A stretch of DNA of 64,000 nt from the NCBI GenBank assembly GCA_002104905.1, contig MCFE01000399.1, positions 17,366 to 81,365 on the forward strand. Reading direction: 5' to 3'. This stretch comes from Basidiobolus meristosporus CBS 931.73. Lineage: Eukaryota > Fungi > Basidiobolomycota. The translations under genes were made by a program, and so were the position numbers. The notes beneath the pieces were generated by a model. That model did no database searches. It saw only the letters and a list, made by a program, of their open reading frames with translations, and was not told where the DNA came from. Shown here piece by piece: positions 57,392-64,000 of this stretch. Within the stretch, counting starts at the first letter, position 1. Each line of letters starts with the position of its first letter.

Positions 57392-58295
57392 AGTAAACTA
57401 ATCGTTATACTCATATGGCGGTTGAGAACTCCTGAAAAATTGGATTTTTTATTCCTGTGTGCCAATAAAAGAATTATCTAGTTCATTCATGCATCACAAT
57501 TCCCATATGTATTTCTGTTACTAACAATCATGTACCTAGTAAGCGATCCAAGTGGGTGGTATGGGTTGTAAACCCTATGAGACCCATTCAAAAGTGATAT
57601 CTAAAAATCAAACAATTGATTGATCTTATCTCAATTAGCTTTTAGCAACAGATCTACATCCCATGTTTAAATATGTAGCTGACAGTTCTTCCTTCCGTAA
57701 ACGTAACCCTATTTAACTACAGCCTGAGGGCGGGAGAAAAACGCCAATTGCAGAAATCTCCATTTCAACTGAAGCAGGGTAGCCGGAGTAACATTTACAA
57801 TTTATTTAGGAATATGGCTAGGATTCTTATACTATTTGGTTGAGAAAAAAATAACATATGAGTGCCAAGCAATGTAGAGCAATGTTATATATATACAATG
57901 GAAAAACTGGCCGCAAATTAATGCAATAACTAATACATCTGTTTTATCAAGTGAAATTATTGTGTTTCCCACCTATATTGTTCATGCTGTTATAATTTTG
58001 TAATTCCACCAAAATATTCACCTAACTTGGTCACTTTGATCTTTGTCTACAGACCTTAGAGAATTCCGGCCAAATTCTTTGTTGGCATTTACTTGGAATA
58101 TTCTGATCAAAATATCGGATGCCTGGAGTATGAGAAATCTGTGGGTTGTCCAAGCAGCCCAAAACTTTACACACATGCTCTTGAGACCTGCTAGAGCATA
58201 CACAATGAGCATATTTTACCCATACTTTGTAAAAGTGTGAATACTCCTACACATTCAGTAAATCATTAAGTAAAAACTGTTGTAAAAATTGTAAT

Positions 58296-58456
58296 TTAGG
58301 GTTAGGGATGAAAGTCACCAAGTGGTGAAATCTTTATTGACTTAAGACAAGTATCTAAAGAAACTAGGTTAACCTGAAGTTACTTAGGGTTAGGGGGAGG
58401 AAAGTCACCAAGTGGTGAAATCCTTATTTACTTTTGACAAGTATTTAGGGTTAGGG
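58296..58456 (+). repeat. Telomeric (TTAGGG)2 tracts at 58296-58307, 58384-58395 and 58445-58456, alternating with 49-76 bp element 3' stubs
   Basis: Read directly from the sequence. Confidence 0.9.
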
Positions 58457-58580
58457 GGAGGGAAAGTCACCAAGGTAGGTGAAATCTTTATTTGATTTCA
58501 GACAAGTCTAACTACAAATAAAGAAGCCAGCTGGCAATAGAAGGTTCCCAAAGTAAACACTATGTTGAATATGAATAAAT

Positions 58581-59309
58581 CTAAGCTAAAGTTAAGGCAG
58601 TATCCCAGAGTACACTGGAGTTCAGGTTCATGGGGGAGTGAAGCAGATAAGCTTGAGAGATATAATAATCTTTGAGGAAGTGGGTAACAGCAGGTGAAGG
58701 GGAGTTTTTGATAAGTGAAGTGAATCTTGAGAGCAGAGATTCCTCTAGTGAGAAGGTCTTGTAAACTGGAGAATCGGGAAACTCTTTGAAGGCATGGTCA
58801 GTAGGTTCCCAGTAAAACTGGTCAGAGACATTTTGAGAGAACTCTTTAGCAATACTTTTGTCAAGTACTACCTCCAGAGTGTGATGGTTGATAAATCTCA
58901 TGTTTACAATCTTGGATAAATTGTAACCTTGTTGCTTGAGATACATCCTATGCTCAGATATAGGAATAAACTCCACATTGGCAAAGTAGCAGACATCCCA
59001 GTCAGCAGCAGGAGGCAAATTGGAAGTGGCAGGAAACTTTCTTTTAGTCTTGGGAGGAGCAGCAGGATGTCTTGAGGAAGCAGGAACAGGCTTTTTGACA
59101 GCTTCAGAGTAGGAAGGGTGAGCAGGAGCAGATGATTCTTGGGGAGTCTTGTTGACAGGAAGAGTTGGCACAGGGACAATAGATTCTTGCAGATCAGAAA
59201 AGGCAGAAAACAGCTTTTGAACTTGTTTCTTGAGTAAAGCATTTTCAGCTTCAACAAGTGCCAGCCTTTCCTCAAGGAAGGAAATCTGAAGGGAATGGAG
59301 GGAAGGCAT
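58581..59309 (-). CDS. ORF1/Gag-like protein of the non-autonomous telomeric unit, 242 aa from the ATG
   Basis: N-terminal coiled coil (LEERLALVEAENALLKKQVQKL), Pro-rich linker with PSYSEAVKK, and an RRM-like region (YFANVEFIPISEHRMYLKQQGYNLSKIVNMRFINHHTLEVVL). The architecture is typical of non-LTR ORF1 proteins. Confidence 0.7.
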   Translation of the reverse strand: MPSLHSLQISFLEERLALVEAENALLKKQVQKLFSAFSDLQESIVPVPTLPVNKTPQESSAPAHPSYSEAVKKPVPASSRHPAAPPKTKRKFPATSNLPPAADWDVCYFANVEFIPISEHRMYLKQQGYNLSKIVNMRFINHHTLEVVLDKSIAKEFSQNVSDQFYWEPTDHAFKEFPDSPVYKTFSLEESLLSRFTSLIKNSPSPAVTHFLKDYYISQAYLLHSPMNLNSSVLWDTALTLA

Positions 59310-59613
59310 AAGAAATAAGAAGAAGAGGGTAGGATAGGGTGGGTGGGTGGCAAAATTAGCAGGGAGAAGAGAAGGAAGGAGCAAAAATTCCAGAAGTCAG
59401 AATTTATAGATGGATGGACAAGGGTAGATGGATGGATTATTCCTGGGTTAGGAAAATTAGCAGGGAGAAGAGAAGGAAGGGCTAGGGGGGGAGGAAAGGG
59501 TTAGGGGAGGGAAAGTCACCAAGTTGGTGAAATCTTTATTTGAGGGTTAGGGGGGGGGGAGACAGTCACCAACAGGTGAAATCTTTATTTCAGTTGAAAC
59601 AAAGAAGACAGCG

Positions 59614-61750
59614 CTACTGTTGTAGCTTTGATACAAGAGTGTGTAGCTGAGGGGAATTTGTAGGTAAGTTAATAAGAAGTGATGATAGTTCTTCAGTGCT
59701 CAAGACACTGTTCAGTGGGAAGGGGGGTAGCAAGAGAGGTAAGAATGACTTGTGAACAACATTAATGAGGGGAATGTGAGAAGGATTGATATTCATCATA
59801 AAGGGAGTGTGCTGCTGCAGATATTGCTGCCAAAGGTCTGTCAAGTACTTCAGGTAGGCCAGCTTGGGTTTTTCTGACTGCAGAATATAGTGAGCAAACT
59901 TCTTGACTTCAGGATCTCCAAGTATAGTTCTCCAGCAGGAGCCAGGTGTAGTGTGGTGTGTTCTCTTCCAGGCCTTAATCAGTGGGTTGTTGCAGTTGTG
60001 AAGTCTGAGGTATAATCTGGTTCTAAGGTAGAGAAGTCTGATCTTATAGGGCATAAACCCAAAAGCACCAAGAATAGCATGTCTGTAGTGGCATTCAGGC
60101 AAATGAGGCACCAAGGAGGTAATGCACCATACTGCAAACTTGTCAAGCTTAGTGCAGTCTCTAGAAGTAAGAGAGAGAAGTGGTAAGCCAAATTCCAGGA
60201 CAGGGAAGACAAACTGCTTGAGTAGAAGGAGGCAGCTGGGAGCTGAAGTTGTAGGAGGAGTTACAGCCAGTAGCTTGTGGAGTGCCTGTCTTGCCAGGAT
60301 AATTCTCTTCTTCAGGTGTGCTCCAGAGTCTAGTCCAGCAGGAAGGAAAGGAAAGCCAAGATATGTAGCAGAAACCTGAGCAGGTAGAGTGGAGTTCTCC
60401 AGGTTGATGGGAGAGCCCAAAGGTACTGTCTTTGCAATGGAAAGCTGGAGATTATTCTTCTGCAGATACTGGTGGATGGTCTGGGAGTCTTGTTGCACAT
60501 TGGAGGAGGATATTCTGATGTCATCAGCAAAGAGAGTAACCAGGCAGTCAGCTGAGAGTCTTGGGAAATCATTCAGGAAGATGGCAAACAGTATAGGACC
60601 AAGCACAGAGCCTTGAACCACTCCATTAGGAACTGAGAACACAGCTGATTGCTCACTTGGGTGCAGAATTCTTGCTTGTGGATCCAGAAACAGAGACCTG
60701 ACAAGGAGGGTGAGAGAGGTACTGGAGAAGCATTGCAACTTGGACCAAAGCAGATTTCTGTCAACTGAATCAAAGGCCTTAGTAATATCAAACAGAACTG
60801 AGGGATACTTGCACTGGAGAGAGTGATCTTGGCTAAGTATGACTGCATATTCCAAGGAGAGGCCAGGAACAAAGCCAAACTGTGCAGGATGAAACTTGAG
60901 GGAGTCAGAGTAGAGCTCCTGAGCAAGCAGAAGCTCAAACACCTTTCTGCAGGTGGGCAGCAGAGATATTGGCCTGTAGGAGCTAGGATCCAGGTGCTTT
61001 CCTTTACCCTTGTACAGTGGCAGAACATTTGCAAAGGACCATTCCTCAGGAGTAGAAAGCTGGGCTGAGCATTGTTGAAACAGTGGAAGCAGAAGTGCAG
61101 ACATGGCCTTGGTACTAGTCTTCAGAAGCTCATAAGAGATTGTGTCCACACCTGGAGCAGTAGAGTTGGGAAGTCTCTTGAGCACATTATGGATTCTCCC
61201 TTGATCAAGTGCCAGTGGGATGGGCAGAGTCTTGAAGTCAGGATGAAAGCCAGGAGTTGAGTACTGCTTTGTAGAGAAGAAGATGTTAGCCAGCTGTTCT
61301 GTTGAAGGTAACTTCCTGGAAGAGGGCCTCATTGCCCTGTAGAGTCTTGATACTGTTCTTGTTATAGAGTTGGAAGATTGCAGAGGCAAAGAACTCATAA
61401 TATGATCCCAGAGCTGAGTGTGCAGAGAGTGGTGAATTGCCTTGGAGTGGTGTATTGCTGTCAGGAGGAGTTTCTCTGTTTTTGGGTTAGGGAAACTCAC
61501 GTAGCTTTGTTGCAGGGCTGAAACAATGGATTCCCATTTTCTTGAGGTAACAGCAGTAGTCTTGCATGGCAGTGAGAGGGAGGCAGACACCAGAATCAGA
61601 TGCTTCACAAAGAGCCAGGCATAGTTGAGATCATCTGGCAGAGAAAGTAGCAAACTGGCAAGCTTCAAGTAGTTCCCAAAGTCTTTCTTCTGATTCTTAG
61701 TAGCTTTGTGGGTGAGCACAGTAAGTTTTGGCAGCTTCTTCTTCACAACT
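59614..61750 (-). CDS. LINE-type reverse transcriptase, copy 1, 5'-truncated at telomeric repeats, frame intact
   Basis: APGVDTISYELLK, WSFANVLPLYKG, YRPISLL, QFGF, DITKAFDSVDR, GVVQGSVLGPILF, FADD, YLGF. The MVTVSPNPNPNP start in the ORF track is read-through of the neighbouring unit and telomeric repeats. Confidence 0.95.
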
Positions 61751-61771
61751 GGGTTAGGGTTAGGGTTAGGG
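61751..61771 (+). repeat. Telomeric repeat tract GGG(TTAGGG)3; shorter tracts at 59445-59452, 59498-59506, 59544-59552 and 61930-61938
   Basis: Read directly from the sequence; G-rich strand on +, consistent with a right-hand chromosome end. Confidence 0.92.
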
Positions 61772-61932
61772 GAGACAGTCACCAACAGGTGAAATCTTTA
61801 TTTCAGTTGAAACAAAGAAGCCAGCGCTACTGTTGTAGCTTTGATACAAGAGTGTGTAGCTGAGGGGAATTTGTAGGTAAGTTAATAAGAAGTGATGATA
61901 GTTCTTCAGTGCTCAAGACACTGTTCAGTGGG
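61772..61932 (-). mobile_element. About 160-bp 3'-terminal stub of the RT element
   Basis: Near-identical to 59559-59719; ends at an internal GGG followed by TTAGGG. Confidence 0.92.
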
Positions 61933-61995
61933 TTAGGGGGGAGACAGTCACCAACAGGTGAAATCTTTATTTCAGTTGAAACAAAGAAGCCAGTG

Positions 61996-64000
61996 CTACT
62001 GTTGTAGCTTTGATACAAGAGTGTGTAGCTGAGGGGAATTTGTAGGTAAGTTAATAAGAAGTGATGATAGTTCTTCAGTGCTCAAGACACTGTTCAGTGG
62101 GAAGGGGGGTAGCAAGAGAGGTAAGAATGACTTGTGAACAACATTAATGAGGGGAATGTGATAAGGGTTGATATTCATCATAAAGGGAGTGTGCTGCTGC
62201 AGATATTGCTGCCAAAGGTCTGTCAAGTACTTCAGGTAGGCCAGCTTGGGTTTTTCTGACTGCAGAATATAGTGTGCAAACTTCTTGACTTCAGGATCTC
62301 CAAGTATAGTTCTCCAGCAGGAGCCAGGTGTTGTGAGGTGTGTTCTCTTCCAGGCCTTAATCAGTGGGTTGTTGCAGTTGTGAAGTCTGAGGTATAATCT
62401 GGTTCTAAGGTAGAGAAGTCTGATCTTATAGGGCATAAACCCAAAAGCACCAAGAATAGCATGTCTGTAGGGGCATTCAGGCAAATGAGGCACCAAGGAG
62501 GTAATGCACCATACTGCAAACTTGTCAAGCTTAGTGCAGTCTCTAGAAGTAAGAGAGAGAAGTGGTAAGCCAAATTCCAGGACAGGGAAGACAAACTGCT
62601 TGAGTAGAAGGAGGCAGCTGGGAGCTGAAGTTGTAGGAGGAGTAACAGCCAGTAGCTTGTGGAGTGCCTGTCTTGCCAGGATAATTCTCTTCTTCAGGTG
62701 TGCTCCAGAGTCTAGTCCAGTAGGAAGGAAAGGAAAGCCAAGATATGTAGCAGAAACCTGAGCAGGTAGAGTGGAGTTCTCCAAGTTGATGGGAGAGCCC
62801 AAAGGTACTGTCTTTGCAATGGAAAGCTGGAGATTATTCTTCTGCAGATACTGGTGGATGGTCTGGGAGTCTTGTTGCACATTGGAGGAGGATATTCTGA
62901 TGTCATCAGCAAAGAGAGTAACCAGGCAGTCAGCTGAGAGTCTTGGGAAATCATTCAGGAAGATGGCAAACAGTATAGGACCAAGCACAGAGCCTTGAAC
63001 CACTCCATTAGGAACTGAGAACACAGCTGATTGCTCACTTGGGTGCAGAATTCTTGCTTGTGGATCCAGAAACAGAGACCTGACAAGGAGGGTGAGAGAG
63101 GTACTGGAGAAGCATTGCAACTTGGACCAAAGCAGATTTCTGTCAACTGAATCAAAGGCCTTAGTAATATCAAACAGAACAGAGGGATACTTGCACTGGA
63201 GAGAGTGATCTTGGCTAAGTATGACTGCATATTCCAAGGAGAGGCCAGGAACAAAGCCAAACTGTGCAGGATGAAACTTGAGGGAGTCAGAGTAGAGCTC
63301 CTGAGCAAGCAGAAGCTCAAACACCTTTCTGCAGGTGGGCAGCAGAGATATTGGCCTGTAGGAGCTAGGATCCAGGTGCTTTCCTTTACCCTTGTACAGT
63401 GGCAGAACATTTGCAAAGGACCATTCCTCAGGAGTAGAAAGCTGGGCTGAGCATTGCTGAAACAGTGGAAGCAGAAGTGCAGACATGGCCTTGGTACTAG
63501 TCTTCAGAAGCTCATAAGAGATTGTGTCCACACCTGGAGCAGTAGAGTTGGGAAGCCTCTTGAGCACATTATGGATTCTCCTTTGATCAAGTGCAAGTGG
63601 GATGGGCAGAGTCTTGAAGTCAGGATGAAAGCCAGGAGTTGAGTACTGCTTTGTAGAGAAGAAGATGTTAGCCAGCTGTTCTGTTGAAGGTAACTTCCTG
63701 GAAGAGGGCCTCATTGCCCTGTAGAGTCTTGATACTGTTCTTGTTATAGAGTTGGAAGATTGCAGAGGCAAGGAACTCATAATATGATCCCAGAGCTGAG
63801 TATGCAGAGTGTGGTGAATTGCCTTGGAGTGGTGTATTGCTGTCAGGAGGAGTTTCTCTGTTTTTGGGTTAGGGAAACTCAGGTAGCTTTGTTGCAGGGC
63901 TGAAACAATGGATTCCCATTTTCTTGAGGTAACAGCAGTAGTCTTGCATGGCAGTGAGAGGGAGGCAGACACCAGAATCAGATGCTTCACAAAGAGCCAG
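61996..64000 (-). CDS. LINE-type reverse transcriptase, copy 2, continues beyond the window
   Basis: Same motifs as copy 1; 7 amino-acid differences counted over the 664 shared residues; no stops or frameshifts. Confidence 0.95.
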   Translation of the reverse strand, partial: WLFVKHLILVSASLSLPCKTTAVTSRKWESIVSALQQSYLSFPNPKTEKLLLTAIHHSKAIHHTLHTQLWDHIMSSLPLQSSNSITRTVSRLYRAMRPSSRKLPSTEQLANIFFSTKQYSTPGFHPDFKTLPIPLALDQRRIHNVLKRLPNSTAPGVDTISYELLKTSTKAMSALLLPLFQQCSAQLSTPEEWSFANVLPLYKGKGKHLDPSSYRPISLLPTCRKVFELLLAQELYSDSLKFHPAQFGFVPGLSLEYAVILSQDHSLQCKYPSVLFDITKAFDSVDRNLLWSKLQCFSSTSLTLLVRSLFLDPQARILHPSEQSAVFSVPNGVVQGSVLGPILFAIFLNDFPRLSADCLVTLFADDIRISSSNVQQDSQTIHQYLQKNNLQLSIAKTVPLGSPINLENSTLPAQVSATYLGFPFLPTGLDSGAHLKKRIILARQALHKLLAVTPPTTSAPSCLLLLKQFVFPVLEFGLPLLSLTSRDCTKLDKFAVWCITSLVPHLPECPYRHAILGAFGFMPYKIRLLYLRTRLYLRLHNCNNPLIKAWKRTHLTTPGSCWRTILGDPEVKKFAHYILQSEKPKLAYLKYLTDLWQQYLQQHTPFMMNINPYHIPLINVVHKSFLPLLLPPFPLNSVLSTEELSSLLINLPTNSPQLHTLVSKLQQ

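Follow-up and report, generated by a model that had tools for sequence, protein, structure and literature searches.

A one-way stack of LINE, ORF1-only and SINE-like elements at a contig end of the fungus Basidiobolus meristosporus

A contig of Basidiobolus meristosporus ends in a one-way stack of retroelements that comprises a LINE, an element with ORF1 as its only gene and a SINE-like element. Most probably, the stack belongs to the inner portion of an array at a chromosome end, built through repeated target-primed reverse transcription by a telomere-specialised consortium of retroelements. Flies, silkworm and rotifers are known to have chromosome ends made by retroelements, and the stack is a fungal variant of these. 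An earlier note on this DNA knew of no such system in early-diverging fungi, and we likewise found no paper on one in Basidiobolus or Zoopagomycota.

Architecture and distribution of the arrays

The window is the whole stretch of DNA analysed, 64,000 nt long. Its positions 58296-64000 are the terminal 5.7 kb of the contig (C700), position 64000 being the contig end. The features, by position and strand, are:

58296..58307, +, innermost junction, two TTAGGG units right after non-array DNA
58308..58383, -, unit 1, 76-nt 3' fragment of the SINE-like family C, with tail hairpin and 3' region
58384..58397, +, two telomere units closed by a 5-G run
58398..58444, -, unit 2, 47-nt family C 3' fragment, with a TTA overlap between its truncation point and the following telomere unit
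58445..58458, +, two telomere units with a 5-G run at the end
58459..59481, -, unit 3, family A element of about 1 kb with an ORF1-like gene only, and tail hairpin
59483..59498, -, micro-unit, TA and a 7-G run with just 7 nt (AGGAAAG) of a family C tail
59499..59507, +, a single telomere unit, GTTAGGGG
59508..59543, -, 36-nt fragment, tail only, of an A-type subfamily
59544..59559, +, GGGTTA, then a 10-G run
59560..61749, -, LINE (family B) copy 1, 5'-truncated at about ORF2 residue 205
61750..61771, +, three telomere units, the longest internal tract of the window
61772..61929, -, 158-nt 3' fragment of LINE family B, with GGG common to its truncation point and the following tract
61930..61941, +, a single telomere unit carrying a 6-G run
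61942..64000, -, LINE family B copy 2, whose open frame leaves the contig end at about ORF2 residue 251

Direct reading and a repeat search place the starts of the TTAGGG-type tracts, all on the plus strand, at 58296, 58384, 58445, 59499, 59544, 61750 and 61930. After each tract comes the 3' end of an element in antisense, made up of a G-run, a linker of 5-7 nt and GTCACC-loop-GGTGAAATCTTTATT. The 3' end of every unit is joined to a TTAGGG-type motif. A regular-expression search of the window returned seven complete tails (at 58314, 58404, 58466, 59515, 59565, 61778 and 61947) and none on the reverse strand; (CCCTAA)2 is also absent from the window, and TTAGGGTTAGGG occurs five times there against no occurrence in 100 shuffles. 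With the micro-unit, the complete tails give eight units in a single orientation, all with their 5' side facing the contig end, in agreement with the earlier note, which had claimed at least eight units with outward 5' ends. That note also had every unit begin, as read along the plus strand, straight after TTAGGG repeats and without poly(A). The placement is borne out, but the repeats amount to only one to three units each; the window junctions have no A- or T-runs. The further claim that every unit is 5'-truncated stands for the LINE copies of the window, but unit 3 (58459-59481) looks full-length.

Array copies are absent from window positions 1-58295 and from C700:1-10000. A terminal (TTAGGG)n is absent from C700, which breaks off within a LINE copy. 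Such caps are found on other contigs. Long (TTAGGG)n tracts, of about 200 nt, are present only at their extreme ends and cap 5'-truncated copies; the telomerase-type capping proposed before is thus seen, although not on C700. The terminal tracts measure about 48 nt at locus L006 and 192-222 nt at L018, L023, L027 and L030; at L002 a comparable multi-block tract forms the end, and at L011 and L020 the tract continues to the edge of the locus examined. Genome-wide, (TTAGGG)5 has 7145 matches.

The distribution was examined with the 30 best of 62 scored LINE copies and their contig ends, the initial screen having given 1617 candidates. In all 30 the 5' side faces a nearby contig end, at a distance of 0.2-10.3 kb (median 2.1 kb; summed log10 p = -48.9). 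The sense strand of the element is on the C-strand in 30 of 30 loci, and all tails are oriented alike with respect to TTAGGG. A LINE-derived system confined to ends and of one polarity, as had been proposed, is what this sample contains. The arrays also explain why many contigs of the assembly break at chromosome ends. Relatives in at least seven other public samples carry the same tail, and at L034, L035, L036 and L040 the relatives have head-to-tail junctions as well.

The LINE, its endonuclease and its partners

The autonomous full-length LINE (family B) is about 4.4 kb long and has ORF1, an in-frame UGA and ORF2, the last comprising an APE-type endonuclease and a LINE-type reverse transcriptase (RT). 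The two RT frames of the window, on the minus strand at 59614-61749 and 61996-64000, carry the motifs APGVD, YRPISLL, KAFDSV, QGSVLGP and FADD. They match Pfam RVT_1 (1.9e-25), and their best solved relative is human L1 ORF2p (3.5e-13). The enzyme is therefore of LINE and not of Penelope type, as these motifs had been taken to mean. Copy 1 retains the RT and the C-terminal region, without endonuclease and ORF1, and matches residues 205-917 of ORF2 in L004, a full-length copy, at 99% identity. The LINE copies have no LTRs and are frequently 5'-truncated at varying points; identity between copies from separate ends is 98-99%. Such near-identity and the very high copy number suggest that the element may be currently active. 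Against proteins outside its own family, the RT reaches 29-38% identity at best in two protein searches, the matches being unnamed or "hypothetical" proteins of mixed taxa. Aphid proteins, possibly TRAS-like, were set aside as its nearest kin because an RT-only search matched flatworm, turtle, Mucoromycota and metagenomes equally well. Downstream of the RT just two Cys are invariant; that region has no Pfam match and no conserved CCHC or PD-(D/E)XK pattern, and ORF2 has no conserved Cys-rich motif.

The endonuclease region, N-terminal in ORF2, is carried only by full-length copies outside the window (e.g., L004). By sequence, it matches Pfam families below threshold (PF14529, 3.5e-4; PF03372, 0.013) and nothing in the PDB. 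Its AlphaFold model (pLDDT 90) matches APE1 (2.3e-10) and, as second best, the TRAS1 endonuclease (1wdu; 3.1e-10). The motifs N, Y, GDxN, D and SDH are kept across lineages, the catalytic motifs being conserved in relatives that are 48-63% identical; the metal-binding Glu is Asp in all lineages. From model and motifs, the full-length LINE is predicted to encode an intact APE-type endonuclease, and the likeness to endonuclease-deficient elements that the earlier note had drawn has to be given up. Since the endonuclease is conserved, priming by a natural chromosome 3' end is possible but not required, and its conservation argues that nicking matters.

The three families share a CACC-loop-GGTG hairpin. 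On the sense strand their 3' ends consist of AATAAAG, this hairpin, a brief linker, a C-run whose length depends on the family, TAA and 0-4 further CCCTAA units, and poly(A) is absent from all three. A search for RNA sequencing runs covering the stretch found none; the transcripts may end with the C-run, with additional CCCUAA units or, past the AATAAA signal, with poly(A). Compared with shuffles, only the 3' end of family B folds significantly better (z = -5.2; others -0.03 to -1.65); the CACC/GGTG stem is invariant across families and hence offers no covariation support. In unit 3, the family A ORF extends over 58581-59309 from the first ATG (58581-59384 as listed), and the 5' region of the unit has CATCC repeats and TATAAAT. 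The ORF is 36% identical to the LINE ORF1 (tblastn 7.7e-20), and copies of the family, 0.9-1.04 kb long and 95-96% identical, are present at L014, L016, L022, L023 and L026. ORF1 has a coiled-coil region and a beta-alpha-beta-beta-alpha-beta (RRM-like) domain in a moderately confident model; the model matched nothing in the PDB significantly (best RRM-like matches, E about 0.09), and the sequence matched no Pfam family beyond coiled-coil noise. As to family C, unit 1 is about 92% identical to the 3' ends of units of about 520 nt at L002, L007, L015 and L027. The full unit at L002 has tRNA-type A and B boxes as read by eye; ARAGORN called no tRNA on the SINE-like units.

Spacers and growth of the arrays

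At most two telomere units are present in 63 of 66 junctions analysed. One TTA with a G-run is found in 41, two units in 14, three in two, five in one and less than one unit in eight. Internal (proximal) tracts have a median length of 12 nt, including the G-run, and a maximum of 32 nt. The G-run has 4, 5-6 or 6-7 G depending on the family (Kruskal-Wallis p = 7e-8), and being family-specific it must be encoded by the element. The spacers are thus mostly the element's own telomere-complementary tail, and the earlier description of the array as interleaved with telomerase repeats is largely wrong. A or T runs occur in none of the 66 junctions, the tails being a C-run and TAA. Unit lengths range from 45 to 3383 nt; among the 36 units bounded by two tails, 28% are of 200 nt or less, and micro-units retain about 7-30 nt of body. 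Plain nicking within long tracts fits poorly with spacers as short as these.

We prefer the view that the arrays grow by addition at the end followed by capping. This much of the earlier proposal agrees with end confinement, single polarity and the caps elsewhere, whereas its analogy to endonuclease-deficient elements and its telomerase-made spacers have not survived. The C-rich tail of the RNA would pair with the G-rich 3'-OH of the telomeric G strand. The 3'-OH could be that of a natural end, critically short or uncapped, or could come from a nick at the tract base, made by the endonuclease of the element. The hairpin would recruit the RT, which would then extend the G strand. Early abort, or a switch to another tailed RNA, may be frequent and would leave many short 5'-truncated units with joints of one or two telomere units. 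Telomerase would afterward add a long (TTAGGG)n as a cap to whichever truncated copy lies outermost.

The short spacers bear most directly on a TRAS/SART-type scheme, where the APE endonuclease nicks the G strand anywhere in an existing long (TTAGGG)n and the spacers are leftovers of the telomerase tract. The conserved APE fold and catalytic motifs, the structural match to the TRAS1 endonuclease and a polarity that agrees with a G-strand nick all suit such a scheme, as do the 17 of 66 junctions with at least two perfect units. However, the internal tracts are far shorter than the terminal ones, and under uniform nicking in a 33-unit tract the probability of 63 of 66 spacers with two units or fewer is log10 P = -72. 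The spacer is, moreover, mostly a family-specific G-run and not GGG, the full TTA is missing in eight junctions, and micro-units with so little body are hard to make by separate insertions; we regard the scheme as rather unlikely. A possible, if doubtful, alternative accepts that the arrays are real and has them grow mainly by recombination between ends (unequal exchange or break-induced replication), or by serial template switching in one event, instead of by many separate terminal additions and subsequent capping. It would accommodate the near-identity of LINE copies at different ends and the interleaving of families A and B in either order (L009, L014 and L026; 5-kb loci), and template jumps fit the very short units. 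But truncation points vary by locus, and short-read contigs of the same organism contain more than 100 different alternative joints, every joint listed being a tail start, which implies many independent junction-forming events. Recombination alone cannot make new truncation-tail junctions. The same short-read contigs bear on whether the array exists in the genome at all or results from repeats mis-joined at the contig end. The contig end does fall within a high-copy repeat, and homopolymer G-runs differ among other copies aligned at window positions. Yet the same architecture, with different junctions, is found on 30 contigs, in independently assembled contigs of at least seven other samples and in short-read contigs, one of which, 180 nt long, spans 58154-58333 exactly, across the boundary at 58296; contigs of another isolate (X6) also end in tails. 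The chance of an artefact is accordingly minute.

A bolder reading, to which we give only a slim chance, would make the LINE RT a second telomere-repeat synthase, templated by an RNA tail. Its own CCCUAA-type RNA end would be copied, and by slippage sometimes re-copied, onto worn chromosome ends. Together with the ORF1-only and SINE-like partners, it would share end maintenance with telomerase across very many ends, and the conserved endonuclease would serve to open or trim capped ends and not to choose interior targets.

Comparison with known systems

This early-diverging fungus retains long telomerase-type caps and combines three traits that usually occur apart: a LINE of APE type, known from silkworm TRAS/SART; a 3' tail complementary to the telomere in place of poly(A), known from endonuclease-less Penelope-like elements; and a division of labour among RT, ORF1-only and SINE-like elements that recalls HeT-A and TART. 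Chromosome ends built or colonised by retroelements bear on the relation of telomerase to retrotransposons and on the domestication of transposons by their hosts. If currently active, the elements would offer a culturable system for testing LINE priming from a chromosome end and the purpose of the endonuclease.

TRAS1 and SART1 of Bombyx mori, R1-clade, APE-type LINEs specific for telomere repeats, similarly place APE and RT in the telomeric repeats of a telomerase-positive host, and TRAS has the same polarity, its cDNA extending the G strand. TRAS and SART have a poly(A) 3' end and are located within long TTAGG arrays (in part from PMC10088271). In contrast, the tail here is a C-run with TAA(CCCTAA)n, the spacers are of one or two units, and ORF1 has a coiled coil and an RRM-like domain with no CCHC knuckles seen. 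The Jockey-clade elements HeT-A, TART and TAHRE of Drosophila are stacked head-to-tail at chromosome termini, their 3' ends pointing to the centromere and 5' truncation being frequent, as here, and HeT-A is a Gag-only partner of RT-encoding elements much as family A is of the LINE. The Drosophila arrays are without telomerase repeats and have oligo(A) junctions, whereas here there are long (TTAGGG)n caps, telomere-mimicking tails and a third, SINE-like partner.

According to the summary in PMC10088271, the 3' ends of Athena and Coprina elements carry short reverse-complement telomere repeats able to pair with the G overhang, and at chromosome ends telomere repeats cap copies that have lost their 5' part (Gladyshev and Arkhipova, 2007). 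The 3' repeats, a functional resemblance only, and the truncation and capping are common to both systems, but Athena and Coprina have a Penelope-type RT and no endonuclease, in contrast to the LINE-type RT and conserved APE endonuclease here. The known fungal telomeric non-LTR elements are MoTeR of Magnaporthe, FoTeR of Fusarium and Cnl1 of Cryptococcus (PMC12857005; bioRxiv 10.1101/2021.08.11.455996), which fall into the CRE clade and carry a restriction-like endonuclease at the C-terminus (PMC12857005). They too lie in (sub)telomeric arrays of telomerase-positive hosts, but the endonuclease here is N-terminal and APE-type, and the region after the RT lacks REL and CCHC motifs. Telomere-associated L1-like LINEs are also known from an anole (Tx1-1_ACar) and from Chlorella (Zepp; PMC10088271). 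As here, these are APE-type LINEs with telomeric repeats outside insects, in hosts of different kingdoms. Elements of the L1 clade have an ORF1 with coiled coil, RRM and CTD, a Cys-rich motif at the C-terminus of ORF2 and poly(A); the LINE here has the coiled coil and may have the RRM, and it has neither a conserved Cys-rich motif in ORF2 nor poly(A). Zepp has poly(A).

Stringent-type LINE/SINE pairs, such as eel UnaL2 and UnaSINE1, have a common 3' hairpin and, in place of poly(A), a short tandem-repeat tail of variable repeat number, and they insert genome-wide. By comparison, the repeat in the tail here is that of the telomere, and chromosome ends are the only places where the sampled copies lie.

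An array of tailed elements at the contig end

The stretch examined here covers C700:17366-81365 of a contig (C700) of 81365 nt, so that the contig ends at window position 64000, short of any terminal telomere. On the + strand of window 58296-64000, short TTAGGG-type tracts are followed by a G-run, a linker of 5-7 nt and the hairpin GTCACC-loop-GGTGAAATCTTTATT. Read on the minus strand, which is the sense strand of the elements, the 3′ tail thus has the order AATAAAG, CACC-loop-GGTG hairpin, linker, C-run, TAA and, optionally, CCCTAA units. The units belong to a LINE with ORF1 and ORF2 (family B), an ORF1-only element (family A) and a SINE-like element (family C).

Tails and units of the array (sense strand, minus)
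58314, 58404, 58466, 59515, 59565, 61778, 61947: seven complete tails
Units 1 and 2: family C, 3′ fragments of 76 and 47 nt
Unit 3: family A, ~1-kb element with a single ORF
59483-59498: micro-unit with 7 nt of element body left
59508-59543: tail of an A-type subfamily, 36 nt
Family B: two 5′-truncated copies and one 158-nt fragment
59560-61749 and 61942-64000: large LINE units, RT frames on the minus strand

A motif search of the window found no tails on the opposite strand, and the array junctions have no A-runs or T-runs. The sequence TTAGGGTTAGGG occurs 5 times in the window vs. 0 times in 100 shuffles. The RT frames of both large units carry all the RT motifs quoted in the earlier note and match RVT_1 at 1.9e-25; their closest solved relative is human L1 ORF2p (3.5e-13), and an RT fragment annotated in B. 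meristosporus CBS 931.73 (P0082) is 73% identical to the LINE RT. Tails, RT motifs and the lack of A/T runs together bear out the earlier description of same-orientation LINE-type units at TTAGGG tracts without poly(A). The "TTAGGG repeats" that it placed beside the units are indeed present, but they are merely 1-3 units long.

No further copies were found in window 1-58295 or in C700:1-10000. Just inside the first TTAGGG, some 290 nt (57991-58277) are 73% identical to L021:805-1092, another chromosome-end locus, and have very high depth in short-read contigs; this segment is probably an older element or subtelomeric repeat and not unique DNA.

The full-length LINE and its partners

The genome holds at least 62 LINE copies of 98-99% identity, whose open frame in most cases spans 922 codons. 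Once the 5′ part from locus L003 is added, the element is ~4.4 kb long, and its 5′ end adjoins TTAGGGTTAGGG. In the copy at L004 the frame order is ORF1, in-frame TGA-CTA, ORF2. A single TGA followed by CT(A/C) separates the ORFs there (L004:4267-4269, minus) and in three relatives (L032:2112-2114, L033:905-907 and L034:1666-1668). ORF1 and ORF2 share one frame, the endonuclease begins directly after the TGA, and an ATG after the TGA is missing in three of these four lineages. The arrangement suggests stop-codon readthrough or reinitiation. ORF1 comprises a coiled coil and a beta-alpha-beta-beta-alpha-beta domain with helices, and in L034 its N-terminus bears a Cys motif; a structural search with ORF1 gave no significant match. 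At L003:900-1130 (minus) the N-terminal part of ORF1, which has a CxxC...CxC motif, lies in a different frame from the remainder, owing either to an indel of that copy or to a homopolymer error in the assembly.

The N-terminus of ORF2 is an APE-like domain. Its Pfam matches are sub-threshold (PF14529 at 3.5e-4, PF03372 at 0.013), and a PDB search with the endonuclease sequence gave no match. Relatives of 48-63% identity keep the motifs N, Y, GDxN, D and SDH, with the metal-binding Glu replaced by Asp. An AlphaFold model of the domain (pLDDT 90, pTM 0.89) matches APE1 (2.3e-10), the TRAS1 endonuclease (3.1e-10) and a variant of the L1 endonuclease (1.7e-9). Since the motifs are conserved and the model matches APE folds, the endonuclease of the family looks functional.

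The partner families are smaller. Family C copies of full length (~520 nt) have A and B boxes resembling those of tRNAs at their start, as read in L002; ARAGORN called no tRNA on these units. The sole gene of family A is an ORF of 242-267 aa that aligns with the LINE ORF1 at 36% identity, and other contig ends also have copies of this element, 0.9-1.04 kb long. The predicted fold of the 3′ ends has two hairpins and, after them, an unpaired C-rich tail; only in family B is it significantly better than in shuffles (z = -5.2). The LINE and family C also have a short motif in common: GGGTTAGGG lies on + at window 61485-61493 and 63868-63876, as the motif CCCTAACCC within ORF2, encoding an invariant F-P-N-P. 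CCCTAACCC recurs in ORF2 of relatives (L032:3011, L033:1867, L034:2562); of six lineages, five conserve it as nucleotide sequence, L040 being the exception. The SINE-like element has it too, in its tRNA-like head (L002 about 1399-1407).

Chromosome ends, spacers and the proposed mode of addition

Confinement of the copies to chromosome ends in one orientation relative to TTAGGG, a point raised by the earlier note, held throughout the sampled loci (the best 30 of 62 scored copies). The sense strand of the element is the C-strand in 30/30, and the contig end faced by the 5′ side of the copy lies 0.2-10.3 kb away (median 2.1 kb), in a set that takes in 23 contigs >50 kb; the summed log10 p of such proximity under random placement is -48.9. 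At other contig ends, terminal tracts lie directly next to truncated copies: ~48 nt at L006, 192-222 nt at L018, L023, L027 and L030, and a similar, multi-block tract at the contig end of L002, with the tract still running where sampled loci L011 and L020 end. The assembly has 7145 forward matches to (TTAGGG)5 and 73 reverse ones, so nearly all telomere-bearing contigs have the telomere at the right end.

The spacers were examined at 66 tail junctions. The tract has a median of 12 nt and a maximum of 32 nt; in 41 cases it is a single TTA fused to the G-run, the others having two units (14), three (2), five (1), TA only (5) or none (3). The length of the G-run is characteristic of the family (A 4, C 5-6, B 6-7; Kruskal-Wallis p = 7e-8), and is therefore passed on with the element rather than synthesised by telomerase. 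At 63/66 junctions there are ≤2 proximal units, with log10 P = -72 for a uniform nick in a tract of ~33 units. Because the G-runs are family-specific and the junctions shorter than the uniform-nick model predicts, the spacers consist mainly of the telomere-complementary tails of the elements themselves and are not remnants of full telomerase tracts; the earlier picture of units interleaved with telomerase repeats is largely contradicted by these counts. Among 36 bounded units, 28% are ≤200 nt, and micro-units retain ~7-30 nt of body. Truncation points often have 0-4 nt in common with the next telomere unit. Short units and shared nucleotides fit a process in which synthesis aborts and then resumes by re-priming or by a switch of template. 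One 160-nt piece between two telomere tracts (L003:1262-1425) lacks the tail hairpin and departs from the tail-first pattern; it looks like the untranslated 5′ beginning of a related LINE (cf. L034:1-200).

The sequence evidence is best read as target-primed reverse transcription taking place at chromosome ends. The C-rich RNA tail would pair with the G-strand 3′-OH, and the shared hairpin would recruit the RT, so that the ORF1-only and SINE-like partners could ride along. Priming may start either from the chromosome's own end, where this is short or uncapped, or from a nick that the endonuclease introduces at the tract base, and the outermost copy would be capped by telomerase. A simple TRAS-like entry into long telomere tracts is disfavoured by the short spacers, the family-specific G-runs and the log10 P of -72. 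Addition without an endonuclease, as in the endonuclease-deficient elements to which the array had been likened, is disfavoured by the conserved APE-type domain that the full-length copies encode (motifs, AlphaFold model); the LINE copies in the window lack it only through truncation.

Known systems and support from other samples

Telomeric retroelements as such are already known: TRAS/SART, HeT-A/TART/TAHRE, GilM/GilT, Zepp, Tx1-1_ACar, MoTeR and Athena (PMC10088271). The window contributes one more chromosome end with an array. The fungal cases, MoTeR, FoTeR and Cnl1, all belong to the CRE clade and have a restriction-like endonuclease (PMC12857005; bioRxiv 10.1101/2021.08.11.455996), whereas that of the Basidiobolus LINE is APE-type. 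A literature search on telomeres and retrotransposons in Basidiobolus or Zoopagomycota found nothing relevant. What sets the Basidiobolus system apart from the known ones is the combination of an APE-type LINE, a tail of telomere repeats and two sorts of dependent element, in a fungus of an early-diverging lineage.

Independent data contain the same structures. Short-read contigs (X1, X2) from the same organism have very high depth and >100 alternative joints, and every joint listed falls on a tail start; a 180-nt short-read contig matches 58154-58333 exactly. Another isolate, X6, which carries the same species name, likewise has contigs with these tails at their ends. Relatives from other public samples (L034, L035, L036, L040; ORF2 63-80% identical) have AATAAAG, CACC-loop-GGTG, C-run, TAACCC ends, joined head-to-tail to other tailed units or to a full-length 5′ end. 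A Logan contig from a 63%-identical relative (L036:1-5075) has its final tail joined directly to the beginning of its own 5′ region (CATCC repeats, TAAATTAAC); it is apparently a tandem array of full-length units that has been collapsed into one.
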